Origin: Dicyema japonicum
Lineage: Eukaryota > Animalia > Dicyemida
Length of the DNA: 64,000 bases
Reading direction: 5' to 3'
NCBI GenBank assembly: GCA_011109175.1
Contig: RDEW01000027.1
Span: 858,511 to 922,510, forward strand
Below, one piece after another: positions 9,207 through 57,209 of this stretch. Below the pieces are notes generated by a model. The model saw nothing but the letters and a program-made list of their open reading frames with translations, ran no database searches and was not told the DNA's origin. A program made the position numbers and the translations under genes. How positions within the stretch are numbered: position 1 is the stretch's first letter; each line of letters opens with the position of its first letter.

Positions 9207-10432
9207 TCAATAAATATGGTAAACGTTACGGTAGTATAAATTGTTACGTTTTACCCGGCAAACAGCGTAAATACAGTCAAAATGCACCACAAACGAAACT
9301 GATAAACATTGGAGACTCAGATTGAAAAGAACATATTCCACAGTAATTTTTGAAAGGTCAAATTCATTGGAAATAGATGGGTCGATGGACATCACCTGCA
9401 TGAGCACACCATTAGTAAACACGGGGCTCTTCAAACTATTGATATCTCTAAATTCTCCCCATAGTTTGCATCAATGATATGTTCCGATCTTGGGATGCCG
9501 ACGACTAGCCCCAAAATGTGCTCTGATATCTGTTGGTTCTGTATTGGATAGAATATCAGATTGGAAAAAACTGGTAGTGGAATTCGTTGGGTCACAACGA
9601 CTCCTTCCTTCCAATCAAAGGTCATCACTCCGATGAAAGGGTATTCAAAGGACCGCATGTTTTCGTAGAAGATTGGAAAGACCACAACTTTGCTCTCGTT
9701 GACCACATAGTGTGCCGTAGAATAGCAAGGACTATCGGTTGTCCGCAATTCCGCGAAATGGGATAATTTCACATCAAAAGTGTAAAGATAAGTTTTCACG
9801 GATCCGTCAAGCTCGGTGAGAATTCCATGAAACACAATTTTATGGCCGACAAAAAACGTGGTGTAAGAATTGAGGTTCCTTAGTTCAGGGAACTCAAATC
9901 TTGTCCATATCCTTTCTTTTATTCGGTAAAAAAAGACTAGGCCATTGAGGGAGTACATAATCTCAAGAAGGTACTGAGAAATGGGTCGAATAACATCGCT
10001 AGTGAGAACAAGGATGGGGTCCAATCCATCCATACAAAATGGCACCAGATGAGCCTTCGACGTTGGAGGTGGTCGAATGTGTCCCTGAACATCCACACAG
10101 GACCATGCTCGGTCTCCAAATAAAGAAAATTGTTCAAAGCGGTTTGAGTACCGATGATGATGGCATCCTCCAAAACGGTAAAGAGTGTCCCCCATAATAC
10201 AGAGTTTTTGCTCGTCGACTATTTCAGAATTAATATATTCTTCAGAAATACAGTCAGCCTTTAACGTCGAAAGGTTTTTGATCTTCTTCAAGAACTCCAT
10301 CCTTCGTTTAGTTAGCATGTTCTGTATTAGGAAATTCCAGCTGCGACATACGAGCCTGAGGGAAATCAGCTGTGGAGAGGGAATGTATTGAAGGATTAGA
10401 TTCTGATGGTTCAAATTTATGTCGTCACACAT
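9207..10432 (-). CDS. FBXO42: F-box/kelch-like protein (FBXO42-like), intronless, one apparent frameshift near 9433
   Basis: N-terminal F-box (LILQYIPSPQLISLRLVCRSWNFLI) and kelch-type segments (LYRFGG, PPPTSKAHLV). The 333-aa ORF continues into the 75-aa ORF if one T is added in a T-run. Confidence 0.6.
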
Positions 10433-24759: not shown

Positions 24760-27700
24760 CAGTAGGGCGATTTTTGTCAATAAAGTCAAAAATTCATATG
24801 TTTTTTAAAATTGTTTAAAACTTATAAAAATGTAGTTTTTAATCAAAAATATTATATTAATCAAAAGTTATTAAGTCAAAAAAGTCAAAATTTTGGGTAA
24901 TGTCAAAAAAGGTCAAAATTTAATTTTTTAGGCCAATAAAGTCGAAATTTTTATTGATTTTTATTTTTTTATTTTTCGAGTTTTTTAAATAAAATACTAT
25001 CATGGTATCAATTATCATCATTCACTGTGATGCCGCGTTCAACCAAGAATGAAATTGAAAAGATTAAGTCTATTGTTAGTAAATATCCCAATGAATTTTC
25101 TATAAATTCACAAGGAAATCTTGTAATTTATGTGGGACATTTGTACCTGCAAAAAAACAATTTTTTATTGAATCACATCGATCGTCTAAGAAGCACATCA
25201 AATTAGCTGGTTTATTATTTTTATTACTATTTTACAGGTGTCAATACTACAAAACTAACTTATTTTTTCGTCCCATCTGCCGACACATGGGTCGATAAAG
25301 TCACTAAGGCTTTTGTCGAATCCGAGATTCCCTTTCATAAGCTGAACAGTAAAAGCTTACGAGACTTGTTTGAGAGTATTGGACATAATTTTTCTTCTAC
25401 TCACACTTGCCGAAAAAGTGTAGATAATTTATGGCAGAAGCAGCTTGACAGAATTAAGCTATTTTTTAGGTTTCATTTGCATTTATTATAGATCTGAAAT
25501 AAATTTTGTTTTGATTGACGAAACTGATATCCGGGGACAGAAATATGTCAATACATTGGTAGAATTTCTGATCTAAAAAAATATTTTTAATATCTTGTCG
25601 TCCATTGTCTTCTGCGGCTAACCCGTCGACTGTCTGTCAGATAATTGACGATGTGCTAAGGGATTTTGCGATAGATCGAGAGAATTTTGTATTACTGGTA
25701 TCTGATGAGCCAGATACATGGTAGCTGCCGCACAGGTATTGTGGATTTTTTATTTTAATCGATAAAGGTCGCGACTGTCAAAAACAAGACACGAAGAGAA
25801 AAATTTGCTGAAATCGGGTATCCACCTGAAGTTATTCTAACAAGATGGGGGATTAGGATGGAAGCAGGCCGCTATTATTGCAAAAATTACACATAAATAA
25901 AAAAAATAATTGAAAGTTTCGATGGAGAGGGGCTTTTAGTAGAAAGATATTTGCAAGCGGTTTGTCACAACGAACTACGTACAATTTTATCATCAATTTT
26001 ATGCCAATATGACGATATATGTGAAATGATAAAGAAGGCAGAAGAAACCTATTTCACTATAGAAGACGCTGTTGAAGACATTTAAAAATTGCATTTCGGG
26101 GACGATTTATGTGGAATCGGGAAGTATCTAGAACAGAGCTTTTCAAAAATAATTCCCGCGGCACACTAATCGTAAAAAAAATAATCCACGGCACACATTA
26201 AAAAATTAAATTTTTAAGATGTGTAAAACTAAGTACAAAAATTGAGAATTTAATGCCTAAATTTTTATTAATAATAAAAATAAAATCTTAATTATTATTG
26301 TTTTTGCATATATCATCAATATCAGGTCGAATGGTAGACAAAGCCACCCGCATTTCAGCATCAATGTTTCTCAAACTTTCACGTTTGTTATATTTCATAT
26401 TATGCAGCGTAGAAAAACATGTTTCGCATAAATAGGTCGTTGAGAACTGTAAAATTATGGTCAGTGTTGTTTTGATAAACTGGGATATATGTTTCGAATA
26501 TATATCCAGAATTCTCCAATGTCTAACTCCGTCATCATTAATTTTAAAGATCGATCATTAAACAGTGCAATAAGTTCTTCATTTTCTTTAACAGATAAGT
26601 GTTTTGATTCTGACACAAGAAAAGGATTTCGTATCTAAAAATTATTTAAAAAATAATAACCCAATCGAATTTTTCAATTTCTAAGTCTGGAAAATAAGCA
26701 TCCATTTTGTTTTCCAAAATTATTAAATGTTCATTAATCAGTCCCTGTATCGATTCACCATTATATCCTTATTATAATTAAAATATAAAATAAACCATTC
26801 GTATTAGGAAACATAGTATAATCGCAATCTAAAACCCTTTTTCTCCAAAAACTGATTTTCATTTTCAAAGAATTTAATTTGTCCGTCGAAGATAAAATAG
26901 TCTCAGAACCTCCTTGCATACTTGCAATATTCTCCGACAAAGCACAAATCCGACGAGAAACAGTGTTATCTGACAAAGGTATCTTCATTATTTTTTGTTC
27001 ATATTTATGACCAAACATTGTCCGAGCAATAATACGACAAGCAGGGATTATCAAGTTTTCGCCAATAGTGTGAGGTTTTAGTTGTTTTGCTATCAATTCT
27101 GAGATCAGGTATGAACATTTCAATGATTCCTTTGTGTTTACAAAAGTTTCACTGAACATCATTTGACTAGATCTACGATTCATAGTAAAAACTAAATAAT
27201 ACTTTTGTTGTTTTTTCAAATGGATAAAATAATCCACAGATTTTTCGGAATAGTCCGGATGCTTGGAGGTAAAATGTCTCTTTAGTTTGCTAGGAACCAT
27301 AGCATCATTTGCCAAGACTTCCATACAAATTAGACATTGAGGTAGTTTATTTTTATCTATGCATATAAATCCAAATGACAAATAAGAATCTTTATAAGAA
27401 CGACGAACTGATTTACAGATAACCACGTTGATGCGCACGTTATTAAAAAATTATTAAATAATGGTTAACCAATGTAAATGTCATTTAATATATAATAAAA
27501 AAATGATTATTTTAATTTATTTATCTTTTTAAATTAATTAGGTCAAAAAATGTATATAAATTTATTCAAATTTGTATTTGGCAGGCGGCACACTAGAAAT
27601 TGGCACACCGTTTGACAACCTCTGATCTAGAATCAAGATTATCTGTAAATCAAGTGCTTTCTATTTCAAAAATGGAAAAACAACATATTTCTCCATATGT

Positions 27701-37305: not shown

Positions 37306-40300
37306 TTTTTTGGTTGAGGTGGTGACGTCCCTCTACTTGCACTATGTCTTCTTCGTATTGCTTACCAGTTTCTCCCCTCACTCTTGGATCCCTCAACTGC
37401 CGAGGCCTCAATCAGTGCTACAAGAAACAACAATTGGCGCGTGATCTGAGTAAATACAACATCTCTGTCTGTTGTTTGCAAGAGACGAAAATAACCGAAC
37501 AATCTGCAGAACTGTTTCAGAATTTTTACCTTTTGACCCTCACACCAGACTGCAGGCACTATGGGCTCGGATTTGCTGTTCATCGGCACTTGTTTCACTG
37601 TGTCTCAAGAGTATGGGCAGTATCTGACCGTGTCGCGGTGTTACAAATCAAATGCGGAAACAAACTCAACTCAGTGATCTCCATCATAAATGTATATGCC
37701 CCAACCGGAGCACGTGTATCAACGAATATCGAAGAACTGGATACGTTTTACTCTACTCTCACAAGTGTGTACAACTCACTTTCATCCTCTTACTTTCTTT
37801 TTATCGCCGGGGACTGGAACGCCAGGGCCGGAAAAGCAAGACCTGGTGAAACGTGTATTGGATCCCACGGTAGAAACCGCCGTAACATCCCCGGAGAGGC
37901 ATTAATACAATTTTGCACGGCATTCAACCTACTCATATGCAACACTTGTTTCAAGCACCCGGCAAGACACAGGACCACGTGGGTTGGTACCAGAAAAGGC
38001 AAATCTGGAAACACAGTCAATATATACAATCAGATCGACTATATTATCTGCAAGCAACATCAGAAGGCCCTCCTACAGGACTCGAGATCTTACGGTGGAC
38101 TTGAAACAAGTAGCGATCATAAACTTGTGGTCGCCCGGCTAGTACTTAAAAGAATCCATGGAATACACGGGAAACACAAAGGCCTTACCTCAGTACGTTT
38201 CGACACTGAGAGGTTACGCTACGAAGAATCCACCAAATGTCGTTATAGTGCAGTTCTGAGAGATAGCATCAACAGTATTAACCAAAATCAGCCGACAAAC
38301 AGCTTATGGGATGAAATAGTGGTTGCTATCCAAAACACAGCCTTTAGTGTGCTTGGTCACATCACCAAATCTCGTCACAAACAATGTAATCCGGATATCG
38401 GACAACTCTCTGTAACACAGAAAGAGCTCAGACTCCGGATGGAAAACACAAACGCTCCGGAAGATATCAAAGTACTGCGCACCCAGAGAGGGAGAGTCTT
38501 AACGAAGATCAAACAAATACAAAGATTCCTTGCCAAAAATGAAGCTGAGGAGAAAATCTCAGACATATTAAAGTACAAGAACGGACCAAGAATGTTCAAA
38601 GCAATCCGGCTTCTTAGCAGAGAAAACTGTCCAATTTCGTTAACTGTCCATGACAACCTTGGTCACGACGTTATCGGGACCATTAACAAAGCAAACGTTC
38701 TGGCATCCCATTTTGACCTTATGTTCAACAAACAGGACGCGGCTGACCAAGCAATGAAATCTCGGAAGTCTTACAAGTACACTCTAACTAGCCCTATTAC
38801 CATATCCGAAACTCAACAAGCTATTAAAAAATTAAATACCGGAAGATCTGCCGGACCAGACTTCATTACTGCAGAACTTTTACAATACGGCCCGGAGGAG
38901 CTAATTGAAATGATTACTAACATTTTCAACCGGTCTCTCGAGGGTGCAGATGAACTGGAACTGGGAAAAGGGTGGCTAATTCCACTACAAAAACCGGGAA
39001 AAAGTAAAGGCCCCCTCACAACTTCAGACCTATTATACTCCTAACCTCCATACGAAAAACATTATCCCTCATTGCTTTAAACCGAATAAAGGAGAGGGTG
39101 AACATATTTCTTTCGGACGGCCAAAGTGGATTCCGGACGGGCAGGTCCACGGCTGACGTGGTATGGGGGCACAGGTGGTATTGTGCCCTGTGCCAAAAAT
39201 ACAAAAAATCTATTGAGATACTTGGTATCGACATGTCCCGTGCGTTCGACTCGGTGGACCGTGGAAAACTTATGGAAGTGTTGGAGAGTTTTCTACTGCC
39301 TGACGATGTCAAAATAATACACTTACTCATGCGGAACACTCAACTTGCCGTCAAAATTGGTGACTCTACCTCTAACTTTTTTTCGACCTCACGTGGAGTT
39401 CCACAGGGGGACTCACTATCCCCGGTCCTCTTTATTGTCTACCTTGAGGCCGCACTAAGAGAGTTCAGACCCCTGGTTGGCAACAATTATAACGAGATAA
39501 TCTACGCGGACGACCTGGACTTTGTTTCTGAGGATATTCAAGTACTTCAACACATGCTTAACGTTCTTCCACACGTATTCTCGAAATGGTTCTTAACCGT
39601 TAACACCGATAAAACAGAGTTCACAACACTTACACGCAATGATCGAAGATCGGACGAGTCTTGGAGAAAGCAAAAGAAGGTGGGTTCGCTTCTCGGGGAC
39701 TCAGAAGATGTTTCTCGGAGGAAAATCCTCGCAATGTGTGCACTAAAGAAAGTATCGAATATGTGGGGTCATAAGAAGAGGATGGGATTAAACACCAAAC
39801 TCAGAATATATAAGGCTTTTGTCATCCCCGTCCTGACCTACAATTCAGGCACTTGGGGAATCTCTAAACAAGAGATGGACCGTCTTGACGCTTTCCACAG
39901 GACACAATTGAAATCAGTAATCAAGATCAAGTGGCCTAAGAAGATCTCAAACAATGACCTCTACTCGAAGTGCAAATCTGGTATACTATCCGAGGAGATC
40001 TTCAGATCAAGATGGAGTCTCTTTGGACATATCTTACGTCTAAATGCTCAAGTACCCGCGAATATCGCCATGGAAAACTACTTAATGCATACGGGAGCCG
40101 GTTTCCGTGGAAGACCAAGAGTCACACTCCCAACTATTTTGAATGGAGACCTGTCGGCTGTGGGACTGAAGCTCACTTCCGCAGACGACCTAGATACCTT
40201 AAGGGAACTGGCACGAAGTAGAGGGTCCTGGAAAAGGCTGATAGAGAGGATGGCTAGAAATACGGCACAAGGGAGGCTTGATTAATTTTATGACTTCTCG

Positions 40301-40345: not shown

Positions 40346-41051
40346 ATGTCTGGCGATGAATTCGAAAGTTTTGAAACCAAAGTAGACGAAATCAGTAAAA
40401 AATAAAATAATTATAATCAGCAAGGTTGATTAAAGACATGAATTCACCAAACGAAGAAATTCAACTGAGAGCTCTAGAAGAAGCCGATAAATACTGCCAG
40501 CAAACTCAAGGTTAAACAAAATCAATTTTTTAGGCAAAACTACAAGATTTGACAGGAATATTTTTAACAAACCTAAAAAAGATGACGAATCACACCAAAG
40601 TAGTTCTCGGAGTAACTTTCAGACCAATTCTTGATGTCAATGGAGGAGGATGCCAAGCGGAGAAGTCTTGACCGTAAAAAACGTTACCAAAAGCCAACGT
40701 ATTGAAAGATAAAGGAGTGGAGGATTACAAGAGTGGAAACTATGAAAATTTTACTGAAGTTGTCTATTCTACAACTTTAGGCGTTGAAAATGACTAAAGA
40801 TTACGGTGAAGTTTATTTTTTTATGGAATGCGAGGACAGGTACTACTGATGATGGAAAGGTTCGAAGACGCATTGAAGGACTGCGAATCATGCTTAGAAG
40901 TTATCTTTAATATTATTTTAGTTAACCTGTGATAAAAAAGTCTGTGTAAGAAAGCTCAAGTGTCTTATAAAGTTGGGAAGAGACCGAGAAGCATATTCAT
41001 ACTTGGGAGAATGTATCAAACTATTTCCAAGCTATGAGGAACTGTTTAATA
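40346..41051 (+). pseudogene. TTC12: TTC12 (TPR protein, axonemal dynein assembly): 5' exons intact, 3' part interrupted by a LINE
   Basis: Five introns of 22-26 nt give MSGDEFESFETKVDEITRLIKDMNS...QFLMSMEEDAKRR...KANVLKDKG...GNYE...DALKDCE, matching the TTC12 N-terminus. No intact downstream frame could be rebuilt after 42090. Confidence 0.72.
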
Positions 41052-42090
41052 GTAATCACAGATGGCTTCAACATGAAGACGCACTTACGTCTATAGATAT
41101 ACAGAAAGCCTTCGACTCGGTTTCGAAGATTCTCCTAACAAAGAAGATCTTTAACTCAAATTTACATCCGAGCGTCATGCTATGGCTGGAAAATTTCTTA
41201 AATGGCCGACGTGGAAGAGTCCGGATTGGAAAAATTACTTCAAAATCAAGACTACTCCCTAATGGGGTCCCACAAAGCTACCCTCTGTCTCCTCTCTTAT
41301 TTAACTTATTTCTACACGATTTACCTAATGATCAGGACACCATGTTTTTATCTTATGCGGACGACATGATTATCGCTGCAAGGAACAAATCTGCTGCCAG
41401 AGCTGTGGCGGTGGTTCAGTCACACCTCAAACAGGTGTATGACTGGCTATCCAGAAATTTGCTGTCTGTGTCTGCATCCAAGTCTCAGTTCACGCTATTT
41501 ACTACGGACAGAAGATTTAAAGGTGGACTTGAGATATTCCTCGGAAACATTCCCATCCCTTATAAACGAATCCAGAAGATCCTTGGAGTAACTTTCGATA
41601 GAAGCCATCGTAAAGAAGAGCCCCTTCCTTCCTACTGCTTGGATCAGCAAAGTAAACCTTCAAGTTATTGCGCCGACGATTGAATATGCTTGTTCTGTCT
41701 GGAGATTCGCCATTCCTACTACGAGGGTGGAGCGTGTGAATTCTCTCAGACGGAAAATCATGAGGCAAATACAATCAGACTCCACATCCGTCCCCAGTCT
41801 GCTTTCAGAGGAGACGACAGTGAGAAATGGCCTGGGCTTCCTACGTATTTGAAATAAGCTAGGAAACCCATTCAGAGAGAGGGTGGTTCATGCAGAGGAA
41901 TTCAGATCGGCATTAAAAAAGTGCACTCAGATAGAATTCCTTTGCAGAAATAAAAGAAGACACCTCAGAAACGATGTTGGTTCACTGGCGAGCATTCGAA
42001 AAGAATTCGAGAGATGTTGGAGGCAGGGATCACTTAATTTAGCAAGTTAATTCCTTCTTTCTTGGGGTTTAAAATAAAATAAATAAATGA
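41050..42090 (+). mobile_element. 5'-truncated I/Ingi-like LINE (RT core to 3' tail)
   Basis: ITDGFN, IDIQKAFDSV, GVPQSYPLSPLLF, YADD, KILGVTFD, EYACSVW; 3' GGGATCACTTA...GGGGTTTAAAATAAAAT. Confidence 0.85.
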
Positions 42091-42765
42091 AATGTTTTCT
42101 GAAAAAAATTTTTTTTCTTAGTTTGAGTATTGACCTCGCAGCTCTGGACTGTGATATAATTTAACTCATTAATAAAAATGGCAAAGAACGGCGCCAGTTA
42201 TGACTGCTTGTGCTGTGCTTACCAAATATTGTAAGCTTGGAGTTAATAAATAAATAGTACGTTGGGGAGGATTTGAATTATTGAAAAAGCCAACGATATA
42301 CTGATTGAAATTAGAGAGATGTGTAGGTGTTGAGGACGAATAATGTATTATTTATTCATAAAAGGAAGATGCAAAAAGAACGAAAGACATCTCGTGCATC
42401 GTCCAGTTTATATCCATGTGTTTGGTGAGAAAGAAGAGCTTCGAATAAATCACATTTATTTATTTGATAAGCTCAGATATACCATAAGAAGTTTAGAGTT
42501 AGTTGACGTTTATTATATATAACTCCCACGGTGGATTCAGACTTTCCTACCACCATGTCCATCCATATCCGTCATTAGTAGAACCCTTTCACTGGAGTAG
42601 GAAAGAGATAGATCTTTGCTATCTGGTCTCCGAATAAATGAATTTTGAATTTTTGATTTTAATTTTAAATAAACTCATAATTTTTTTTATAATTTAACCT
42701 AATTTGAATTAACCAACTCATTAATCATTTTAGTATTATTTAAAACAACAAACAGTGAGGTAAGT

Positions 42766-45700
42766 TCACATGCAAGTTTTGCAATAGCAGGAAGCATATT
42801 TGGGGATTTTTACTCGCTTACTACTTTCACCACATTTCATGTCGAAAAATATAAGTGGATCGTTTTTATCAACTATACCTCCACAACACTTGCAGTCGTT
42901 CTGAAAGTGCACATTTGCGTTCCAAATTAAAATTTAAAATACTTTAAAATTCACTACTGTCCCAGAATCGCAGTTTCCCCCACAATATGAATATGTTACG
43001 TTGTTGGAGGAGCATTCGCTATTTCTAAAGACTTCAGTCGTAGTCTTGAGACCACAATTTATCTTCTAAAACTGGAAATCTTTGAATAACCTCTGGAAGC
43101 ACAGATCTCGATGTTTATATCAGTTATTTCGATTACATTATCTAAATATTGGTCCTTCTTCGTAAAGATGAAGGTTATTTGCTGAGCCAAAATTGGCTTC
43201 ATGAACAGTAGGGATGATTTCTGAGGATATCGAACAATCATAGTCTAAGCATTAGTCTCATGGATGACCTGATCGTGTTCAAGCCCGTCGGCAGATTCAA
43301 GAAGTACTTGAATGCTTGAAATAAACGTGTTTTTAGATTTTAGATCAAGGGATATGATTTCAAATTCTTGCTTGAACTTCACTGTGAAATTCGCGTTGTT
43401 TTCTCGGGCAAACCACCCTTCCTCAGAGAGAAGATCCATTGGTGATTCTTCACTGGATGTTACTTGGAAGTGATCTTTGTTTTCTTGTGTAAATATAGAA
43501 ACAGCATTGCAAGCTAAATTCTCAGATCAAAAATTACTTTCCGGGTATTTTATGGTGGTCTTCGGTATTTCTAACGATTACAACAAAATTTACCGTCGAC
43601 TTTATTTTTAAAGCATCCCCTGACCACAAACTTATTGACAGAAACAGAAGAGTCAGTGAATTTTAGGATGAGCGTGTCAGTCAAAAAAGTTGCATTTTCA
43701 GTTTCAATATGATCAAATTTGACCAAACCACTCAAAGTTAACAAATTAGTCTAATTCTGCTTAAAACTTACTACCTTGTAATATTTTTGTCCCATGTACT
43801 CATGTTCGATGTTTAACGAAACAAAGTTTTGGTTTGGGACAGTGAATTCGATTTCAGTGATAGTCGCTTCTAAATGTCTTGGGAATTCCAATTTTAAAAA
43901 TGGGTTGATGTCATGAAGACGAGGAATCCATTCCTTCAATCAATTTCATCAAAATTACAATTTCGTTGGAGAATATGTTGGAAGGATGTGAATCTACTTG
44001 GAAACTCGAAGCTGAAATTAGCACGTGTTCATAATTTTGAGAACTGGCAATTTCAGTTACTTTATTTAGACAGGCTAAACAAATAAAAAGAGCACTACCA
44101 GTAGGGGGATGTTTACAAGACACAGTGACGTTTAATGGTTTTTTGGTAGTGGTTGCTATAAATTAAAATGAACAATACAAATAGTGGAGACATTAGATAT
44201 CACGACGTCTAAAAATTAAAAAAAATAAAAACTATCGTCTGAACAGCCCACAATATCAACAGAAATAACTCTAAGGTTAGGACATGAGGAAATGTTGTAA
44301 AAATATCCACAGTTGAATTTAATGGATAAATATTGTACTACGAGAGGACCTGAAGAACCAAAATTCACGTGTAAATTATGTGAAGAAAAATCGAGTTGAT
44401 AAGTCTCAAATTAATAAAAATAATACGGAATGGTATTTTAACTCGTTGGAATAATTCCCCGTTTAAAATTTCGACGGAGATGACACCAGACAGCTGAATA
44501 TTTAAAGATAATATTTTTGGATTGAATAATTTAAATCGGAAAGTAAGAAACGGGTCCTCTGACTCAGTAGTCCAAAATCCGGAGTCAGTAAAAATGTTAG
44601 AGACAGGATGATCGAGGGTGGAAGGACTAGAATGAACCTCAATGAGTGATCTAGGAAATTCAGAAGGTGGAGAAGAACAATAATCTAGAGAAAATAAAAA
44701 TAATTACTAGGTAGAGAACGGGAGAAGTCAAAGCAGAAACTGTGGAAGATTTAAGCGTAGAAGATTTTTGAGTAGATGAAAACTTAGCTGTGGTCGGAGT
44801 AGAATATTCGAAAGTTGAAGGTTTGTTTTCAGCTTAAAAATTATTAGAATAAGAATTTACTTGTAATCGATGGCAAAGGAAACGTGGTTTTAATTCAGTA
44901 GATCGGGAAGGCAAAATCAATTCTGTAGAGTGAATTTTAGTAGTTTTAAATGTTGGTTCAGGCAACTGTTTAGATGTAGGTGATTGAGTAGAAGATTTTG
45001 TTTCAAAGGTAGTTAATTCTTATTTACCATTTAAAATGATATAGCTCACCTGTAATTGTAGGAATAATTTTTGTAGTAGCTTTCTCAGTTAAAATAGTTG
45101 GAATAAACTTTTCAGTTGTTACAGGTTCTGTTGTGAACATCTCTTCTGTAGTAAAGAATTCTGTAGTATAGAATTCCGTAGTAAAATCTGAAGTTGTCGT
45201 GATCTCTTCTAAACATAACGAACATTATATTCTTAACGAGTTATTGTAGGCATAATATTCGTTGTTTCCATTTCAGTAACATATGGCGGTATTATTTTTT
45301 GTGTTGTTTGTGATTCTGTAGTGTAAATTGGAATTTCTGTGGTAGAACCAAGAGTTTCTGTTGTAGTTATCTCTTCTAAACAATATGAACAATATATTCT
45401 TAACGCGTTATCGTAGGCATAATTTTCGTTGTTTCCTTTTCAGTAACAATTGGCGGTATTATTTTTTGTGTTGTTTGTGATTCTGTAGTGTGAGTTGGAA
45501 TTTCTGTGGTAGAACCAAGAGTTTCAGTTGTAGTTATCTCTTCTAAACAATATAAACAATATATTCTTAACTCGTTATTGTAGGCATGATTTTTGTTGTT
45601 TCCTTTTAGTAACAATTGACGGAATTATTTTTTGTGTTGTTTGTGATTCTGTAATGTAAATTGGAATTTCTGTGGTAGAACCAGAGTTTCAGTTGTAGTT

Positions 45701-48700
45701 ATCTCTTCTAAACATATGAACAATATATTCTTAACTAGTTATCGTAGGCATAATTTTCGTTGTTTCCTTTTCAGTAACAATTGGCGGAATTATTTTTTGT
45801 GTTGTTTGTGATTCTGTAGTGTGAGTTGGAATTTCTGTTGTAGAACCAAGAGTTTCAGTTGTAGTTATCTCTTCTAAACATTATGAACAATATATTCTTA
45901 ACTAGTTATCGTAGGCATAATTTTCGTTGTTTCCTTTTCAGTAACAATTGGCGGAATTATTTTTTGTGTTGTTGTGATTCTGTAATGTAAATTGGAATTT
46001 CTGTTGGTAGAACCAAGAGTTTCAGTTGTAGTTATCTCTTCTAAACAATATGAACAATATATTCTTAACTAGTTATCGTAGGCATAATTTTCGTTGTTTC
46101 CTTTTCAGTAACAATTGGCGGAATTATTTTTTGTGTTGATTGTGATTCTGTAGTGTGAGTTGGAATTTCTGTGGTAGAACCAAGAGTTTCTGTTGTAGTT
46201 ATCTCTTCTAAACAATATGAACAATATATTCTTAACTAGTTATCGTAGGCATAATTTTTGTTGTTTCCTTTTCAGTAACAATTGGCGAAATTATTTTTTG
46301 TGTTGATTGTGATTCTGTAGTGTGAGTTGGAATTTCTGTGGTAGAACCAAGAGTTTCTGTTGTAGTTATCTCTTCTAAACATATGAACAATATATTCTTA
46401 ACTAGTTATCGTAGGCATAATTTTTGTTTCCTTTTCAGTAACAATTGGCGGAATTATTTTTTGTGTTGATTGTGATTCTGTAGTGTGAGTTGGAATTTCT
46501 GTGGTAGAACCAAGAGTTTCTGTTGTAGTTATCTCTTCTAAACAATATGAACAATATATTCTTAACTCGTTATTGTAGGCATGATTTTCGTTGTTTCCTT
46601 TTCAGTAACAATTGGCGAATTATTTTTTGTGTTGTTTGTGATTCTGTAATGTAAATTGGAATTTCTGTGGTAGAACCAAGAGTTTCAGTTGTAGTTATCT
46701 CTTCTAAACATTATGAACAATATATTCTTAACTAGTTATCGTAGGCATAATTTTTGTTGTTTCCTTTTCAGTAACAATAGGCGGAATTATTTTTTGTGTT
46801 GATTGTGATTCTGTAGTGTGAGTTGGAATTTCTGTTGTAGAACCAAGAGTTTCAGTTGTAGTTATCTCTTCTAAACAATATGAACAATATATTCTTAACT
46901 CGTTATTGTAGGCATAATTTTCGTTGTTTCCTTTTCAGTAACAATTGGCGGAATTATTTTTTGTGTTGTTTGTGATTCTGTAGTGTGAGTTGGAATTTCT
47001 GTGGTAGAACCAAGAGTTTCTGTTGTAGTTATCTCTTCTAAACATTATGAACAATATATTCTTAACTAGTTATCGTTGGCATAATTTTGTTGTTTCCTTT
47101 TCAGTAACAATTGGCGGAATTATTTTTTGTGTTGATTGTGATTCTGTAGTGTGAGTTGGAATTTCTGTGGTAGAACCAAGAGTTTCTGTTGTAGTTATCT
47201 CTTCTAAACAATATGAACAATATATTCTTAACTCGTTATTGTAGGCATAATTTTCGTTGTTTCCTTTTCAGTAACAATTGGCGGAATTATTTTTTGTGTT
47301 GTTGTGATTCTGTAGTGTGAGTTGGAATTTCTGTGGTAGAACCAAGAGTTTCTGTTGTAGTTATCTCTTCTAAACATATGAACAATATATTCTTAACTAG
47401 TTATCGTAGGCATAATTTTTGTTGTTTCCTTTTCAGTAACAATTGGCGGAATTATTTTTTGTGTTGATTGTGATTCTGTAGTGTGAGTTGGAATTTCTGT
47501 GGTAGAACCAAGAGTTTCTGTTGTAGTTATCTCTTCTAAACAATATGAACAATATATTCTTAACTAGTTATCGTAGGCATAATTTTTGTTGTTTCCTTTT
47601 CAGTAACAATTGGCGGAATTATTTTTTGTGTTGTTTGTGATTCTGTAGTGTGAGTTGGAATTTCTGTGTAGAACCAAGAGTTTCTGTTGTAGTTATCTCT
47701 TCTAAACAATATGAACAATATATTCTTAACTCGTTATTGTAGGCATAATTTTCGTTGTTTCCTTTTCAGTAACAATTGGCGGAATTATTTTTTGTGTTGT
47801 TTGTGATTCTGTAGTGTGAGTTGGAATTTCTGTGGTAGAACCAAGAGTTTCTGTTGTAGTTATCTCTTCTAAACAATATGAACAATATATTCTTAACTCG
47901 TTATTGTAGGCATAATTTTCGTTGTTTCCTTTTCAGTAACAATTGGCGGAATTATTTTTTGTGTTGTTTGTGATTCTGTAGTGTGAGTTGGAATTTCTGT
48001 TGTAGAACCAAGAGTTTCAGTTGTAGTTATCTCTTCTAAACAATATGAACAATATATTCTTAACTCGTTATTGTAGGCATGATTTTCGTTGTTTCCTTTT
48101 CAGTAACAATTGGTGGAATTATTTTTTGTGTTGTTTGTGATTCTGTAGTGTGAGTTGGAATTTCTGTGTAGAACCAAGAGTTTCTGTTGTAGTTATCTCT
48201 TCTAAACATATGAACAATATATTCTTAACTCGTTATTGTAGGCATGGATTTTCGTAGTTTCCTTTTCAGTAACAATAGGTGGAATTATTTTTTGTGTTGT
48301 TTGTGATTCTGTAATGTAAATTGGAATTTCTGTTGTAGAACCAAGAGTTTCAGTTGTAGTTATCTCTTCTAAACAATATAAACAATATATTCTTAACTCG
48401 TTATTGTAGGCATGATTTTCGTTGTTTCCTTTTCAGTAACAATTGGATGAATTATTTTTTGTGTTGTTTGTGATTCTGTAGTGTGAGTTGGAATTTCTGT
48501 GGTAGAACCAAGAGTTTCAGTTGTAGTTATCTCTTCTAAACAATATAAACAATATATTCTTAACTCGTTATTGTAGGCATAATTTTTGTAGTTTCCTTTT
48601 CAGTAACAATTGGCGGAATTATTTTTCGTGTTGTTTGTGATTCTGTAATGTAAATTGGAATTTCTGTTGTAGAACCAAGAGTTTCAGTTGTAGTTATCTC

Positions 48701-51700
48701 TTCTAAACAATATGAACAATATATTCTTAACTCGTTATTGTAGGCATGATTTTTGTAGTTTCCTTTTCAGTAACAATTGACGGAATTATTTTTCGTGTTG
48801 TTTGTGATTCTGTAATGTAAATTGGAATTTCTGTGGTAGAACCAAGAGTAGTTATCTCTTCTAAACATGATCAAGATTTATTATAACTCGTGATTGTTGG
48901 CATTACTGTTTTTGTCATTTTTTCTGTCACTTCAGTCGTTATTGGAATTATCTCTTCTGTTGCATGTTCGGTTTTATTTGTGTATTTCATTGTTGCTGTT
49001 ATTTTTATTTATTAATCTTACTTTCTTTAATCGTCGATATTAATTTTCTAATCGTTGATGTCATCCGTTCTGGACTTTATATTATTTACCATCACCTGTT
49101 GTCGTCGGCCTATGTTTTTCATCTTTCAACGTGCTCGGTACTTCTTTGCTATATTAATTACTTTTACCTATTTCATTTTTTCTTGTTGTCTGTACCTCTT
49201 TTTTCTCTAAATATTAATCCATGTTTTTACTTGGACAGCCAATTATATTAATTTTTGCCAAATTATTTGTAATTATTTTATTTGTCAATGGATTTATGAA
49301 CGTCATTTTTATTTTTTGTGTTTCGCTGTTAAGTCGCACGTCGAAATTTTCTGTGAACTCTTTCCGCTAAAATTTTCACGAATAACCATTACTTTTTCTT
49401 CGTTGTCTGTCTCTACAATAAGTTTCATTAGTTGCTCCGTCCTATTTACCTCACCATAAATTCTCTCCAATATCCATTCTTCGTTATTTAACAAGTCTAT
49501 CTTAATGCTTCCATTCTTGGTTATTCCGACATTTTCGTAATCCATGTCGCCAATCGGAGTTTTTCCAATCAATCCCAACAATTTTACTGCGTTCTCACAT
49601 ATTCCTTCAATATTACTTACTTTCAACCTTTTGGTCTCTGAGTCGTCATTGGCTGCGTCACGTGGGGTATTACTATATTTATTAGTTATATTTTACAAAT
49701 TTTTCCTCCACAGCCTATAACTTTCAGTTGATTCACAAATATGTCATTTTTGGTTATATTTTCGTTTATTGCATAGAACTCAAACTTTATGTCTCTCGCA
49801 GTGAAGTTGTGTTCTAGTATGAGCTCGAAATTCATGCTAAGGGAAATTATATTCTGCAAAATAGCTACAAAGTACAACCTTGAGAATATAGTAATTTGAA
49901 TCAGTATTTTTTTTGATTTTTACGATCACCCTGGCCGCGGAACTCATGTCAAATTTTATTGAAGTGATTATTGGTAAGTCATGTTCCCCAAAATATAGGT
50001 TCAAAAAGACGTTAGAATCAAAAGCACTGGGATTCCACGCGTCCTGACTAATTTTTGCCATTTCTGCGGTTTTTCCTATTCCGTTTGAGGAAGATGAAAT
50101 GATAAAGTAAGTTTCATTTAGTCTTGTTCCTCACAGACATTTTCAATTTTCTGCCCACAGTGGAATATTTTTAAGTTGTTTAGTTTTGCTTGATTTGAGG
50201 GATTTCCGTCTAACGTGAATAGTAATTTGAAATAATGATTTTTTCTGGCTGTTTCCGCAATATCGAATCTGAAAAAGTTGTTAGAAACAGTCGATTCCTG
50301 AATATTAATACTCGGGGTGAACCATTTGATGGATCCATTCTTTTTCATTTTCATTTTTAGCCATTTTCAGTATTACATTGTCAGCAGATATCACGGCAGC
50401 CTGTATCTTCGCAATACGAATGCTTGCGTAAGGAATAGTGAAGTAAATCGCAGTTTCGTTGTCCCGACTGTCAAAATTCCATAATTTTGAATCTGACAGA
50501 GAATTTTTGATAGTTTCATTATTGCTGGTACTCTGAATGTAAAATAGGTCAGTTTTGGTCAAATCTCTGTGGTTGCAGACTAAAATAATTTGTGCCAATT
50601 ATTACTTCCATAGCAGTTACTTTCGTCGGATCCATCACCGCAGTCATCGTGGCCATCGCACGTTGCAACATATTTGACACATCCTCCGTTGTTGCACACG
50701 AATCCTGTTTGGTTTGTGCAAATATGCGATCTGCAGTCGATTTCGTCATTTCCAGTAAGGCAGTTAACAACTCCATCACATCGAAGTTTGCTGTCGATGC
50801 ATTCTCCGTATCCACAATCGAATTGGTTTGGCTTGTTACAAATTTCTTGATTTTTAAAAATAAGATTACCGCAGTTATCCTCGTCTGTTCCGTCCATGCA
50901 GTCTGTTATTCCGTCGCATTTCATGGAAATGTCAATGACTCCGAGAAATATCGCAGCAGAAACTTCCATTTTTGCAGTTTGCGACTAAATTTAGGCCACA
51001 GTCAACTTCCACAGTTTTTTTCGTCTGATCCGTCAAGACAGTTAACTTTTCCGTCGCATTTATCCTTGAGTGGAAGACATTGTAGTCCGTTTGTGCACAT
51101 GAACTCTTTTTTAGAACATTTAACGCAGTTTTCGTCAATACATTCAAATTGTCCATTTTTGCAGTTGCTGGATTAATAAATTTGAAAAGGAATCAACCAT
51201 TTATGGCATCCTGTAATGATCTCTGAGCCAGATTCATAGTATTCTCCGTGAAGATGACAAGGACAGTGTTCATGTTCGACACATTTCCCATCAACTACAT
51301 ATAAATTCTAATAGTACCATCCTCATATAGACCATCAGGACAAAAACAGCCTTCGTGGCAGACCGTTTCGTTAACTGGGAGGAGATATTTAGAGGTTGAA
51401 TAATCACATTTCTTTATCAGTGAGTTACCACAGGATTGATATTTTTTCCCTTCTGGGCACATGTAAGCTGCAATAAAGACAGTTTCTTACGGCAAAACGA
51501 AGTTGATCTCCACAAAACCTGGACTCCGTTATTACTGCATGTTTGGGCAAATGCCCCTACTGCGGTACATAAACAAGCACAGTCTCCACCATAATCACAA
51601 CTGTAAAGGAAATTGAGAATAATTACTGGCAGTCGAGCAATGTAGTAGAATGTTTCCACCACATCCTCAGAAAGGACTGATCGACAAGGCTGAAACATAC

Positions 51701-54700
51701 TCCCTGAAGTTATTATCGAACATTTTTCACTGGCCCACTTGTATTTTTCCTAAAATAGTTATTAGAAGATAACCTTTAAAGTACATAATTTACTAATCGG
51801 GGGGCGGCTTTGATTAAAATTTGTAATGCATTCTAAACTTCCCACGCGCCAAGAATCTGCGAATTCGTGAGGTGAGCTAAGAGATGCTAGCCCGGGAGTT
51901 GTGAAATCGTTTAATTGATTGTCGTCGAAATCCCCACAAAGACCATGGACCTTTCCCATCCACTTTCGGCTGAGATAAGTGTAGATTGTCGTATATTTGT
52001 CCCACAATACTTCAAGACCGATTTTCTCAGCGATCACACGTGCATAAGACTGATGTTTGTAAATGATATGAATATTTTTCGCGTGATAGTCGTCACTGAG
52101 TTCTCTTCCGTTGATTATAAATTTAGAATTCTCTGAAAGTTGGATACGAGTATTCTCGATTACAATTTCTACAGATTTCGTGCACGTGATCCCTTAGAAT
52201 TAAAAAAATCGAAAACCTGAAGCTCCGCAGGCGAAGTTTTGCATATTTATGATAAAGGATGGATTTTCCCGTGATTTGACAAGCGTATATACTTGCATTG
52301 ACCTTCAAAAGAGAAGGCTTTTCCGTCAAAAGTCATGTAGTGGGGATCTCCATAGGCTACACATGTTCCTGCAAAAATGAGTCATTTAATGTGAACCCCT
52401 GCAATCTTCACTTTCTGAGTCCTTAGTCCATATTTTGTTCTCACACGTGCTAAATAATGTTAAATAGTCTTACAAGGCAGAACATTTTGAGCCTATTTTC
52501 TCCCCTGATTTGTAGAATTTATTTCCATGGAGACAGGGACATTGGTCGACCAAAACACAGTCATCCTAAAACTTAGTTGTAAATGAACCATTTGTGAGAG
52601 AACGTATCCTTCCGGACATCCACAACCATGGTAGACCATGTTTTTGCAGTCCTCCATATTATCCTGGCTTGAATCACAGCGCTTTTGACATCCTTTGATG
52701 ATCGTCTGTATTTGATTGCTTGGACATTTAAGAGGAGTGAGAGTTCTATCGCATTTTACCACTCCTCCAACACACGTGCTTTAAATTATGAAAAAACCAT
52801 CTTACCAATTCATACCTGCAGTTGAAAATTTGTCGTTAATTTTTGTATACAACATTTTTTTCAATACACGTGCAGCTTTGTTTGGGGACGCATGTTCCGT
52901 AAGCATCGAAAACCATTCCATCGCTGCATCTACATCCAGGGACACAGATAGATTTGCATTCTTCGTCATTATCTTCACTTTCGTGGCAATGAAGACCACA
53001 TGGAGATATGCAGTCGTGATAATCGCTGTTCTGAGGACATTTGATGCCTAAGTATGCGTTATAGACTGCTCATACCGCATTTTAGCCTGGTATTTGTCCA
53101 ATTCAAGTTGATTCCTTTCTTCGCGCATTCATACACATACGCCGATATGTGAATGCAAGCAATTTTAGATGGCTCAACTCCATTGGCAGCACAAATATCC
53201 TTTGTGCACATTTGATGGTACTCCTCCGGATTTACAGTCTCAAAGCACGTGGATAGACTTCCATGAGAGTTCCTAAGTAGGTTGCATTCTAATTCTGCTG
53301 AGCTCTAATATAGATAAATCGGTAAATCACTTCAGCTTGGCTTGTACATTCAAGGAGAACAGCACTCACAGTTTGGCACTGTTCTGTCTTACTAAGTGTG
53401 TATTCTTTAGCCAAAGAATTATAGTTGAATTTAATATTCCCACTTTTGGTTTGATACTCATTTTTTGAGTTGTAGTCGAATGTTCCACACATTCCCAGCG
53501 TCTGAAAAGTCAGTTTTTATTTTACTTTTCTGAGGTGCGAGTTACCTAGAATGAGGTAAACTCGTGATTGGAGGTCCCAGAGAATGTGAAAACCAAAGCG
53601 GGAGAGCATTATGAAGTTTGGCTCGATTTTTCTAATTCTGAAATAGTTCGTTTGTTGTGGAAAATGAGTCAGAGAAATGTTATTTATATTTATAATCGGT
53701 TTTCCGTTTTTTGAATGAACTGCGATTGAGATCGTGTTATGAAGATTCACAAGAATTCGTCTACTACAGACCTTATGGTCATTAAAGAGGCCAAATCTGT
53801 CCCCCACACTACACAAGGAATTGTCTACGGACACAGAGATGCCTTCGTCGTTCAACTAGAAATCATAAATTACACTTACATGGAGAAGCTCGTATATGCA
53901 CGGATTGCTGTACAAATGCTTAAAGTTTTCGAGATCAAATGTTAGATAATTCCCAATTCCAATGAGTTGACACTCTCCTGGACATTGAATATTTGGACAA
54001 TTCCAAAACCCTGACTTGCAGACACTGATTTAACTAAATTTCGAAATTTCTAACCATTCTTTGCAATTTTGTCTCAGAACCTCTCCGTTTTGGAAAACTT
54101 TTTGTCCGAAATGACAGGGACAGTCCTTCGGTTCAACACACTTTCCGGCCTCATAGAGTGTTCCATCGCGACACTGACATCCCGGAGTGCATTCGCTGTT
54201 ACATTTTTCATACATCCGGGGTAGTGAGGAACACGTGGCACATGAGTTTATGCACTCTGTATAAACCATATCCTCAGGGCATTTGATTGCTGTTTTAAAG
54301 AAATTAAATTAAAAAATATACGGCATATTTTCGATGTTCTCCAAAAAATGGAGAGTCCAACTTGCGCACAAATTGAGGAATACTCCTCCAATGTGCACAG
54401 AGGACAGCTGTGGCTTCCTCTTGTCCTAACGTTTCCTTGGCATGGCAGTACTCGTTTTTACATCTTTCATATATTCCCTTTGGATCGACCTATTTGTTAG
54501 TTGCTATGGAAACTCGTCTTGTACAGACGTCGAATGCTTTCGAATTGATTGTCCCACATTTTATTTCTGCTTCTCTCTTGTATTCCTCTCTTGAGCATTT
54601 TGGCATAATGGCATTCCCTTTGGGACACTGCGGAGTTAATTCAACTATTTTGCTACTTTTAAATATCCCTCCATGTAAGAATTTGCAAATTCTTCAACAT

Positions 54701-56082
54701 CTTCGTTGGTTACTTTTTCGTGAGTATTAAAATCGTCTGAAAAGTAAAAATTAAGTTTGACTTTGAATATTGCCGTCAAATGTTCCACAAAGTCCTTGAA
54801 TCCCTTTGTTTTGGAAAATATTATTGAATGTGACTTGGATAACTTTTGCATTCGTCTTCTCCCATTTCACTCGGATTCCGCGTTTGTTTACGTAATGAAT
54901 GTAATATTCGGATTGAGAGATTTCAAACACTGAAATTGAAATAGTCATCCTTACTTTTTCCGAAGTAAGTCGTGTTGGTGGGGATATTTTGGTCGTTGAC
55001 AATAATATCACTTCCAAAAGTGTATATTATGGGATCATTTTCAATAATAATACGGAGTTGCTTAAATAACTCAAATATCGACTTTTTTGCATTTCAGGCA
55101 ACTGTCACAATTCGTAGGACGGATGCTGATTGCGATGGAACTGGAAGGATTCGCAGCTAGGGTATGCCAGCATCTCGTGTAAAATGTGTATTCCCTTCCG
55201 TCAAACGTCCGGAAGTGGGAATAGGAGGATTCACACGTGGAAAACGGAAGAGCATAGTTGTTTTTTAAGGTCAAATCTAAAAACTCAAACATTTTCGTTT
55301 CATACAAGAGGTTGTATTTTGAACAGAGGCTTGATCTAATGGTTATTCGAAACCGAGTTACCAGACTTCTTTGATTGACAGGACACGCATGTATACCTTC
55401 CTGGAAATCCCCAGGAACCATTTTTGTTGGTCGAACAACAGTCATCGAAAGTCTTGATAGAATCAAAACTGTCAGATTCACTCCCGTCAATGTGTTTTTC
55501 TCCAAAGCATCGCCCATATTTGTAACAGTACTTTTTATCGACGGAGATTTCTGCAGTTTTACAGAATCTAAGAAAAAACTCGACAGAGAATCCTCACAAC
55601 GAAATCCAGCGAATCCCTGATCGCACTCACAGACATTTGGACCAACGCAGACTCCATTTCGGCATTTCGGGCTACAAATTGCTGAAATTTATTCCTAATT
55701 TTACGTTTATCACACAATTTGCCCGTGTACCCTTCACAACATGCCTGGATCTCCCTTATCCCATTCCTGTGATTAATCTAACTTCATACTTGGCATATTG
55801 GCAAATTTCTGGGCTTTTCTCTTGCATAAATTTCATCAGCTCATTTTTCGAATATTTTGCTGAATCTCCAGACAGGAGCCAATTGCCATACAGCATATCT
55901 ATGAAATTTCCGCATAGATCTGTCTTAGTTTCAGTGAAATGTTCTGTTTTGTTGCAGTATCTAAATGTGTTCGGAATATTAAACTTTGAAGTTTCTGCGG
56001 CATCAATTAAAAAATTTTGTTGGTAGACTAGCAGAAGCAATAGAATCCCAAACATTTGAGTCTTAAAGTCATAATTTGGCAT
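42766..56082 (-). CDS. Giant secreted SCO-spondin/hemolectin/gel-forming-mucin-like protein: SP-EMI-like-EGF-(VWD-C8-TIL)x3-LDLa x4-discoidin-like modules-PTS array-discoidin-like modules-CTCK
   Basis: Signal peptide [11 protein letters not shown]; [18 protein letters not shown] (EGF); [35 protein letters not shown] (VWD); CDGxxxCxDGSDE (LDLa); Thr-rich repeats; YSYCGGNC...CKCC...SCYCKTCM* (cystine knot). Dozens of micro-introns; not every junction was resolved. Confidence 0.86.
45209..48887 (-). repeat. Tandem array of ~22 x ~167-bp units, each a 138-nt exon plus a ~29-nt intron
   Basis: Exon encodes [46 protein letters not shown]; intron GTTAAGAATATATTGTTCATATTGTTTAG; 23 occurrences of the ATCTCTTCTAAAC junction counted by eye. 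Confidence 0.93.
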
Positions 56083-56727
56083 ATTAAGTGAGAAATTGCA
56101 GCATATGGGATAGAAAACATGTGGATAATTCGATTTGATTGATTGACTTTATAATCTCACTAATTTTCATTATCGAGCTTATTATTTGCTAAAAGTTTGT
56201 AATTTTTTAATTAAATTTTGATTTTAATTAACCCTTGGATGGCAGATATTAAACTCAAGACACACGAACAAAGGAATTTCTCAGAATTTATTCGGATATG
56301 GCAAATGGTATATTTTACTGGTTTGTGGTTTTTTAAATAAATTAATATCAAAAAGAGAAAAAGCAGAGCAACAGCTTGTTCTAAATTGAAATAATGCCAT
56401 ACAGATTAAGATTCTCATCAGATTGATATGATGGTTATCAATAACTATCAACTGACGGTGGTCGACACCAATCAAGCGCAATTCTAGTTCATCTTATCGG
56501 GTAATGCTTGCATGTTTAATCAATCGGCTGAGTCTAATTATACACAAATCAGAAAACACATCAAAAAACAACTAAATAGGAAACCAATTCACAAGCTACC
56601 AGATTTATTGGTCACGATAACCCCTATATTTTGCACATGGAGATATTGAATGAAATCTATCACACATTTGACTGAAAGCAAAATAAACCAAAGACTTTAT
56701 TAAGTAATTAGAAGTCCAAAATAGCGA

Positions 56728-57209
56728 CTATTTCTTAACCGCTTTAAGAATATCATTAAATTTCCAGTCGGTTAATTCGTTAATTTCGATACTAGGTATG
56801 TTTAAGCGAGACTTGACTTCTGTGTACGAGGCAGCCATCATCATTTTATTTCTTGTACTAGATTTTTCGTTGTTCCTTTAAGTAAATCAGCTTATAACCA
56901 TTTTACTAGAATAAGCTTGCCCACAATGTCCAAAACAACGTAGAAAGAGTCATCTTTGGAATAAATGAAGTCCAATAGACCATTGAACATGCACTCTGAT
57001 AGTTAGTCTCAATCAATACCATCGTCAGCGTTCTGATAATCTCTACCAGTATACTCAACGTCTATCTGTCCGTGAGAGTGACCGAAGACCAGAAAACGAT
57101 GGGGAACTTTCTTATTTTTCAATTCCATGAAACTGTTCATGACTTCATCGCTGACTGCAACTCCTGAGGAAAGGACCTACAAAGTAACACATTCAAATGA
57201 TCAAACCAT
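56728..57209 (-). CDS. CFL: ADF/cofilin actin-depolymerising factor, 3 micro-introns
   Basis: ATG, 30-nt intron, VLSSGVAVSDEVMNSFMELK...YVVLD...KLILVKW...RNKMMMAAS...*. Further introns of 24 and 23 nt. Confidence 0.87.

Follow-up and report, generated by a model that had tools for sequence, protein, structure and literature searches.

We analysed a stretch of 64,000 nucleotides (nt) from the dicyemid Dicyema japonicum (assembly GCA_011109175.1, contig RDEW01000027.1, positions 858,511 to 922,510; hereafter the window, in whose numbering all coordinates are given). A satellite-like tandem array on the minus strand, at 45209-48887, is probably an array of coding exons and micro-introns that forms the central Thr-rich domain of one large secreted protein gene, with splicing and expression predicted from the sequence. 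Under this reading, each 46-residue repeat would lie on its own 138-nt exon with phase-1 boundaries on both sides, followed by a 29-nt GT..AG intron that would have to be spliced out. The 167-nt unit, exon and intron together, would have been amplified as a whole and kept homogeneous by unequal crossing-over or gene conversion, and selection may constrain the protein frame as well as nearly all bases of the tiny intron.

Organization of the array

Tandem Repeats Finder (TRF) reports a single array at 45193-48849, with a period of 167 nt, 22.0 copies, 95% matches and a score of 6428, and there is no other large tandem array in the window. A higher-order repeat was considered and rejected, as the TRF periods of 333 and 500 nt fit no better than 167 nt. 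The sense strand of the array is the minus strand, and the plus strand is G/T-rich. Read on the minus strand, each unit contains a GTTAAG...TTTAG segment and, after it, an open frame of about 138 nt. The segment is 29 nt long in 18 units and 28 nt long in four. Each repeat unit comprises one complete exon and one complete intron (22 of 22 units; 28-29 nt from GT to AG plus ~138 nt). The features of the array and of its immediate flanks, all on the minus strand, are as follows.

45209..48887, minus strand: the array as originally delimited, 23 micro-introns and the 22 exons between them
47869..47897, minus strand: typical micro-intron, 29 nt, GTTAAG...TTCAT...TTTAG, phase 1, TAA at intron bases 3-5
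47731..47868, minus strand: typical exon, 138 nt, identical to the array consensus, 46 residues
48861..48887, minus strand: first array intron, diverged, 27 nt, GT..AG, phase 1, in-frame TGA
45209..45237, minus strand: last array intron, diverged, 29 nt, four differences from the consensus
48888..48995, minus strand: upstream flanking exon, 108 nt, phase 1 on both sides, its end resembling the second half of the repeat
44884..45208, minus strand: two diverged Thr/Ser-rich cassettes downstream, exons of 159 nt and 135 nt, both phase 1 on both sides
45019-45049, minus strand: intron between the two downstream cassettes, 31 nt, GT..AG, in-frame TAA

Two exon types are interspersed along the array, with PIY(I/T)TE in seven units and PTHTTE in 15. 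The repeat contains 16 Thr, 2 Ser and 4 Pro per 46 residues (Ser plus Thr 39%, Pro 9%). This Thr-rich composition is of the mucin type, and O-glycosylation is predicted from it. Symmetric phase-1 exons adjoin the array on both sides, six before it and two after it, and those upstream of the 48888..48995 exon extend to about 49652.

These observations bear out most of what the original prediction had read from the same letters, namely about 22 tandem cassettes of exon and micro-intron, two interspersed exon variants, an in-frame TAA inside the intron, and a repeat unit that belongs to a mucin-like gene. Its proposals that the intron is as conserved as the exon, and that it was amplified and homogenised together with the exon, also agree with the comparisons between units given below. 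Two of its claims did not stand: that every exon is symmetric, since seven of the 22 exons are not multiples of three as assembled, and that the arrangement is undescribed, since SmPoMuc and the spider Flag gene have it (PMC2576457).

Reading frame and coding signal

When the array is read unspliced, all six frames are closed, with 52-97 stops per frame; the longest open run reaches 76 codons on the minus strand, against 54 on the plus strand. Since no plus-strand run exceeds 54 codons, coding on that strand was rejected. In the minus-strand reading, each exon is bounded by introns that follow the first base of a codon (phase 1), and reading through the exon end gives AGT TAA, placing the TAA in frame. 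A retained segment would therefore stop translation at once, and as 29 equals 3n+2 it would also shift the frame. When the 29 nt are removed, 14 exons continue in frame as ...MPTIT-K-EITTTE.... Removal of the micro-intron is thus both needed and sufficient for an open frame, and the intact exons join in frame.

The units differ from one another as expected of sequence that codes in the predicted frame. Substitutions relative to the consensus occur at 1.8%, 1.6% and 5.9% of codon positions 1, 2 and 3, respectively (Fisher p 3e-9, counted on instances), so that third positions in this frame vary 3.5 times more than the others. Among the 12 intact 138-nt exons, differences per non-synonymous site (pN) are 0.025 and those per synonymous site (pS) are 0.104, giving a pN/pS of 0.24.

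Properties of the proposed 29-nt micro-intron

GT and AG are kept in all 23 array introns, which are 27-29 nt long. About 10 nt ahead of the AG there is a TTCAT motif, in agreement with the branch-point pattern YTNAY. Folding of the micro-intron gave no structure beyond that of shuffled sequences (z -0.2). The introns resemble others of the same gene: 30 further short introns found by an exon-chaining script are 18-31 nt long, start with GTA in 17 cases and with GTT in six, and most commonly end with TTAG. Similar introns have been surveyed in 51 animal genomes, where introns of 18-31 nt were found only in D. japonicum and myxobolid myxozoans and were described as GT..AG introns of less than 30 nt with reduced motifs ('GTa', 'AG') (Hadjez et al. 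2026, PMC13644364). The array introns share the GT..AG boundaries and the length below 30 nt. That study is a genome-wide survey of length and motif, and in the parts consulted introns amplified in tandem with exons are not described.

The intron is more uniform among units than the exon. Substitutions relative to the consensus amount to 1.0% in the intron and 3.1% in the exon, and only two of the 29 intron sites are variable. The pairwise difference between introns is about 0.02, which is about five times below that of synonymous sites and close to that of non-synonymous sites. In the edge cassettes the sequence has diverged. The intron at 45019-45049 is barely alignable with those of the array, but it and the diverged first and last array introns have all kept their GT..AG boundaries, phase 1 and an in-frame stop. 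Real introns behave in this way, holding their position and phase as their sequence drifts. We note that the 22 paralogous copies of one 29-nt intron provide a natural read-out of constraint on ultra-short introns.

Two further observations concern the intron ends and lengths. Every array intron (45209-48731, minus strand) ends in a tandem acceptor, TAG-AAG, and splicing at either site, giving a 29-nt or a 32-nt intron, keeps the frame; the 32-nt version, using the AAG acceptor, would drop one Glu. The same 1-nt shortening (TT to T) is found in the four 28-nt introns (45708-45735, 46375-46402, 47370-47397 and 48202-48229, minus strand). They are spaced 4-6 units apart; either exchange has spread a real variant, or the same consensus error has recurred.

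Evolution of the array

All four allele combinations are present in 71 of 136 pairs of informative sites, indicating mosaic variants. Mean identity between units is about 96-97% for near neighbours and falls to 92% at a distance of 19-20 units. The central units equal the consensus, and the edge units are the most divergent, at 94-95% identity to it. Mosaic variants, divergent edges and identity falling with distance together suggest unequal crossing-over or gene conversion, acting on exon and intron together.

The host gene

The array lies within a gene of ~13.3 kb, which starts with an ATG at 56055 followed by a signal-like N-terminus and ends with a TGA at 42768-42766. If the array is read intact, the protein would have about 3,700 residues. 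The gene model was built with exon-chaining scripts, and several of its longer introns are uncertain. Its main parts are listed below.

42766..56055, minus strand: whole gene, rough model, from exon chaining and Pfam matches on open pieces
50583..55688, minus strand: N-terminal domain region, with VWD, C8, TIL and LDLa matches on open pieces
42769..43065, minus strand: C-terminal cystine-knot-like end, with CxGxC, CxCC and CxCxxC spacing recognised by eye

The predicted order of domains is an EGF/EMI-like piece, three VWD-C8-TIL sets, LDLa repeats, modules without assignment and the Thr-rich array, followed by more Thr/Ser-rich exons, further such modules and the cystine-knot-like end. The three VWD-C8-TIL assemblies are supported by Pfam matches that occur in order from 55688 to 51420 on minus-strand open pieces, and Pfam also indicates the EGF-like piece ahead of them. 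After the VWD region, Ldl_recept_a matches with E values of 8e-23 (three stretches) and 9e-12 indicate at least four LDLa repeats. At the C-terminal end, the only match, to DAN, was weak (E 0.039) and below the cut-off. No CysD or VWC domain was detected among the open pieces tested, Pfam had no match for the modules on either side of the array, and a search of 42000-57000 against Rfam gave no match.

The upstream part with VWD, C8, TIL and LDLa domains and the downstream end are on the same strand as the array and frame-compatible with it. The link from about 49231 to 48995 is weakly supported; small exons or a single 235-nt intron would both keep the frame. Upstream of the gene start, on the same strand, there is a small ADF/cofilin-like gene at 56731-57176 (minus strand; weak Pfam match to Cofilin_ADF, E 0.019), which would set the 5' limit of the mucin-like gene.

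The Thr-rich region is flanked by about five modules of ~100-150 residues, at 49231-50598 and 43100-44650 on the minus strand. Each of them ends with a hydrophobic strand and GC (...IIGCP, ...VIGCGG, ...IVGCSDD), which by eye recalls the ends of discoidin (F5/8 type C) domains. For the 127-residue module upstream of the array, a single-sequence AlphaFold model had a predicted local distance difference test score of 41 and was unusable.

Frame-broken exons

The exon lengths as assembled are 129, 135, 138 (13 exons), 139 (one exon), 137 (five exons) and 136 nt (one exon). Fifteen of the 22 are multiples of three, all of them with phase 1 on both sides, and one of these 15 contains an internal +1/-1 pair. 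The exons affected by frame-changing indels are as follows.

48230..48368, minus strand: frame-broken exon, 139 nt, one extra C beside a C
48065..48201, minus strand: frame-broken exon, 137 nt, CC short of one C
47565..47701, minus strand: frame-broken exon, 137 nt, same C loss as in 48065..48201
47233..47369, minus strand: frame-broken exon, 137 nt, AAA short of one A
47067..47203, minus strand: frame-broken exon, 137 nt, one base lost ahead of an A run
46567..46703, minus strand: frame-broken exon, 137 nt, CC short of one C
45572..45707, minus strand: frame-broken exon, 136 nt, two single-base gaps
45903..46040, minus strand: exon with internal +1 and -1, 138 nt, about 10 residues garbled, no stop

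In an alignment of 21 units we counted 15 indel events, 13 of which are deletions and two insertions, and 12 of the 15 fall in runs of at least two identical bases. The same alignment contains 10 singleton substitutions. Long-read consensus error typically leaves such an indel spectrum, which would be unusual as a product of natural mutation, and the indels are therefore probably technical. The assembly was made by merging a Platanus assembly of Illumina reads with a Falcon assembly of PacBio RS II reads, and the description names no polishing step (PMC6736024). An assembly made in this way would explain why the indels cluster in the array, a repeat too uniform for short reads to resolve. We consider long-read consensus errors the most likely origin of the frame-breaking indels.

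An apparent 1-nt frameshift is also found outside the array, in the conserved and unique third VWD domain, at about 52262-52275 (minus strand) in a GGGAAAA run. Positions 1-28 and 54-153 of the Pfam VWD domain match two open pieces. What lies between them can be read only after a change of frame, and the gap is too short to hold an intron.

Comparison with known systems

In kind, the architecture is already known from SmPoMuc and Flag, and what is new here is the miniature scale. The SmPoMuc genes of Schistosoma mansoni carry a 27-bp exon in a genomic repeat of ~1 kb with up to about 20 units; the introns are more than 94% identical, r1 and r2 exon variants are interspersed, and concerted evolution has been invoked (Roger et al. 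2008, PMC2576457). The present array is likewise found in a parasite mucin-like gene, and consists of tandem units, each with one short exon (a multiple of three in 15 of the 22 as assembled) and an intron, in which variants are interspersed. The SmPoMuc unit, however, measures ~1 kb and includes a microsatellite spacer and introns hundreds of bases long, whereas the unit described here is 167 nt, composed of a 138-nt exon and a 29-nt intron. A cassette of this size with so short an intron makes the array look like a satellite. SmPoMuc is also a small protein of a multigene family, unlike the ~3,700-residue VWD/LDLa/cystine-knot protein predicted here. Finally, transcripts of SmPoMuc have 1-100 repeats derived from at most 20 genomic copies (PMC2576457); this variation has been demonstrated at the transcript level, whereas for the dicyemid array it would be a prediction.

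In the spider silk gene Flag, introns are more homogenised than exons, according to the passage on it in PMC2576457, which likewise points to SOWgp of Coccidioides. Like the array described here, Flag consists of iterated exon-intron pairs that encode a repetitive protein, and it is explained there, as far as that passage goes, by concerted evolution and selection on exons. The Flag gene (Hayashi & Lewis 2000, Science 287:1477) is reportedly built of about a dozen units with kilobase-scale exons and introns and encodes a silk.

The domain order of the predicted protein is like that of the gel-forming mucins MUC2, MUC5AC and MUC5B, with three N-terminal VWD-C8-TIL sets, a central Ser/Thr/Pro-rich domain and, judging by eye from the cysteine spacing, a possible cystine knot at the C-terminus. 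Vertebrate mucin repeat domains sit in one large exon, and the gene described here differs from the vertebrate mucins of the same build in having its repeat split over many exons. The LDLa repeats after the VWD region are shared with SCO-spondin. That protein has many thrombospondin type-1 repeats; here, no TSP_1 match was found in the about 35 open pieces of the gene that were scanned. We found no paper in a literature search on dicyemid mucins.

Alternative explanations

Several observations weigh against a coding exon array. As assembled, seven of the 22 exons are frame-broken and run into stops, and translation would end at the fourth array exon. When the third-position excess is counted by variable sites, only 12 of 24 such sites are third positions (binomial p 0.07), as the instances are not independent, and the difference between intron and third positions by site counts has p 0.065. 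The coding signal is thus large in size and modest in independent support. In addition, a 45-residue exon was unmatched among 5.8 billion proteins and 1.84 billion representatives, and the spliced junction was unmatched in a metagenome scan. D. japonicum is seemingly absent from these libraries, where an exact look-up of the LDLa open frame likewise gave no match, and a unique VWD exon gave only one weak foreign match. These blank searches are uninformative on expression, because even a transposable element in the window, a long interspersed nuclear element (LINE) described below, has no near-identical match there.

A first alternative takes the frameshifts as real: the gene as a whole, or its repeat domain, may be decaying, with the coding signature as the relic of a recently lost function. 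The seven frame-broken exons and the garbled one, the further apparent frameshift in the third VWD domain and the lack of any matching transcript-derived protein in the libraries searched would all be expected in this case, and some indels recur in several units, as if spread by unequal exchange. The recurrent positions are equally expected from context-specific sequencing error, though, and the spectrum of the indels, with deletions in short runs and more indels than singleton substitutions, is that of long-read consensus error. The unique exons of the gene are otherwise long and open and keep their cysteine patterns. We therefore regard decay as unlikely, although it is the foremost competitor of a functional coding array. 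It is less probable still that the array is a non-coding satellite outside the mature mRNA, either part of a single very long intron or a spacer separating a VWD/LDLa gene from another gene downstream. The array does resemble a satellite, repeats reportedly make up 49% of the D. japonicum genome (PMC6736024), and the link from the last clear upstream exon, at about 49231, to the array is weakly supported. But a satellite would hardly show the observed pN/pS and third-position excess in exactly the frame made by GT..AG removal, nor match both flanks in strand and phase, with diverged Thr-rich cassettes continuing on both sides. A 3.8-kb intron would also be extreme for a genome with a mean intron of 38 bp (PMC6736024).

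A further possibility, akin to the length-tuning system of the original prediction, accepts the splicing proposed above and adds that the array serves as a length-variation device, in which in-frame exon skipping, repetition or back-splicing would yield many isoforms. Any subset of the intact exons would stay in frame, as all are phase 1 on both sides, the SmPoMuc genes offer a precedent (PMC2576457), and the TAG-AAG tandem acceptor could give variants of 3 nt. The spacing of the splice sites points the other way. Each donor has one acceptor at a distance of 29 nt and the following one only at 196 nt, far beyond the usual introns of this gene, so that skipping is expected to be rare. If sites pair across each of these short introns, it is also less puzzling than the original prediction supposed how so many identical sites could avoid mis-pairing. 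On balance such a device seems improbable, and a coding array of exons and micro-introns, spliced unit by unit, remains our preferred explanation.

Implications

Satellite-like tandem repeats in the D. japonicum genome can be coding arrays under this explanation, and gene finders and repeat maskers would miss them. With assembly-type indels of the kind found in the array, an automatic model would truncate the ~3,700-residue protein. Being large, secreted and mucin-like, with a repeat domain that could be resized, the predicted protein is a candidate for a molecule at the surface or interface of a dicyemid. More speculatively, satellite-like cassettes of exon and micro-intron might be a general route to build and resize secreted Ser/Thr-rich coat proteins. 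Some of what is counted as repeats, 49% of the genome, would in that case be unrecognised coding sequence, almost all intron bases would be selected as strongly as amino-acid-changing sites, and copy number, possibly with skipping or repetition, would yield length-variable mucins at the host interface, as in SmPoMuc. We hold this broader proposal only tentatively and think it rather doubtful.

Genomic setting and neighbouring features

The GC content of the window is 37.2%, and that of the D. japonicum genome is 36.7% (PMC6736024). For Henneguya, 29.1% is given (PMC13644364).

Other features of the window lie outside the mucin-like gene. An intron-free F-box/Kelch-like open frame of 333 residues is found at 9431-10432 (minus strand), and a BED/zinc-finger-like open frame with weak matches at 26761-27438 (minus strand), where the sequence is AT-rich (28% GC). 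An RTE-type LINE occupies 37344-40285 (plus strand) and is found also at 40973-41683 (plus strand); its open frames are those of an endonuclease and a reverse transcriptase. The best named relatives of its reverse transcriptase are from Octopus sinensis (50-56% identity), followed by Elysia and Sycon, with no near-identical copy in the library. Octopuses are hosts of dicyemids, and the kinship of this element to Octopus may be either an echo of the host-parasite association or an instance of the usual patchy distribution of RTE elements.

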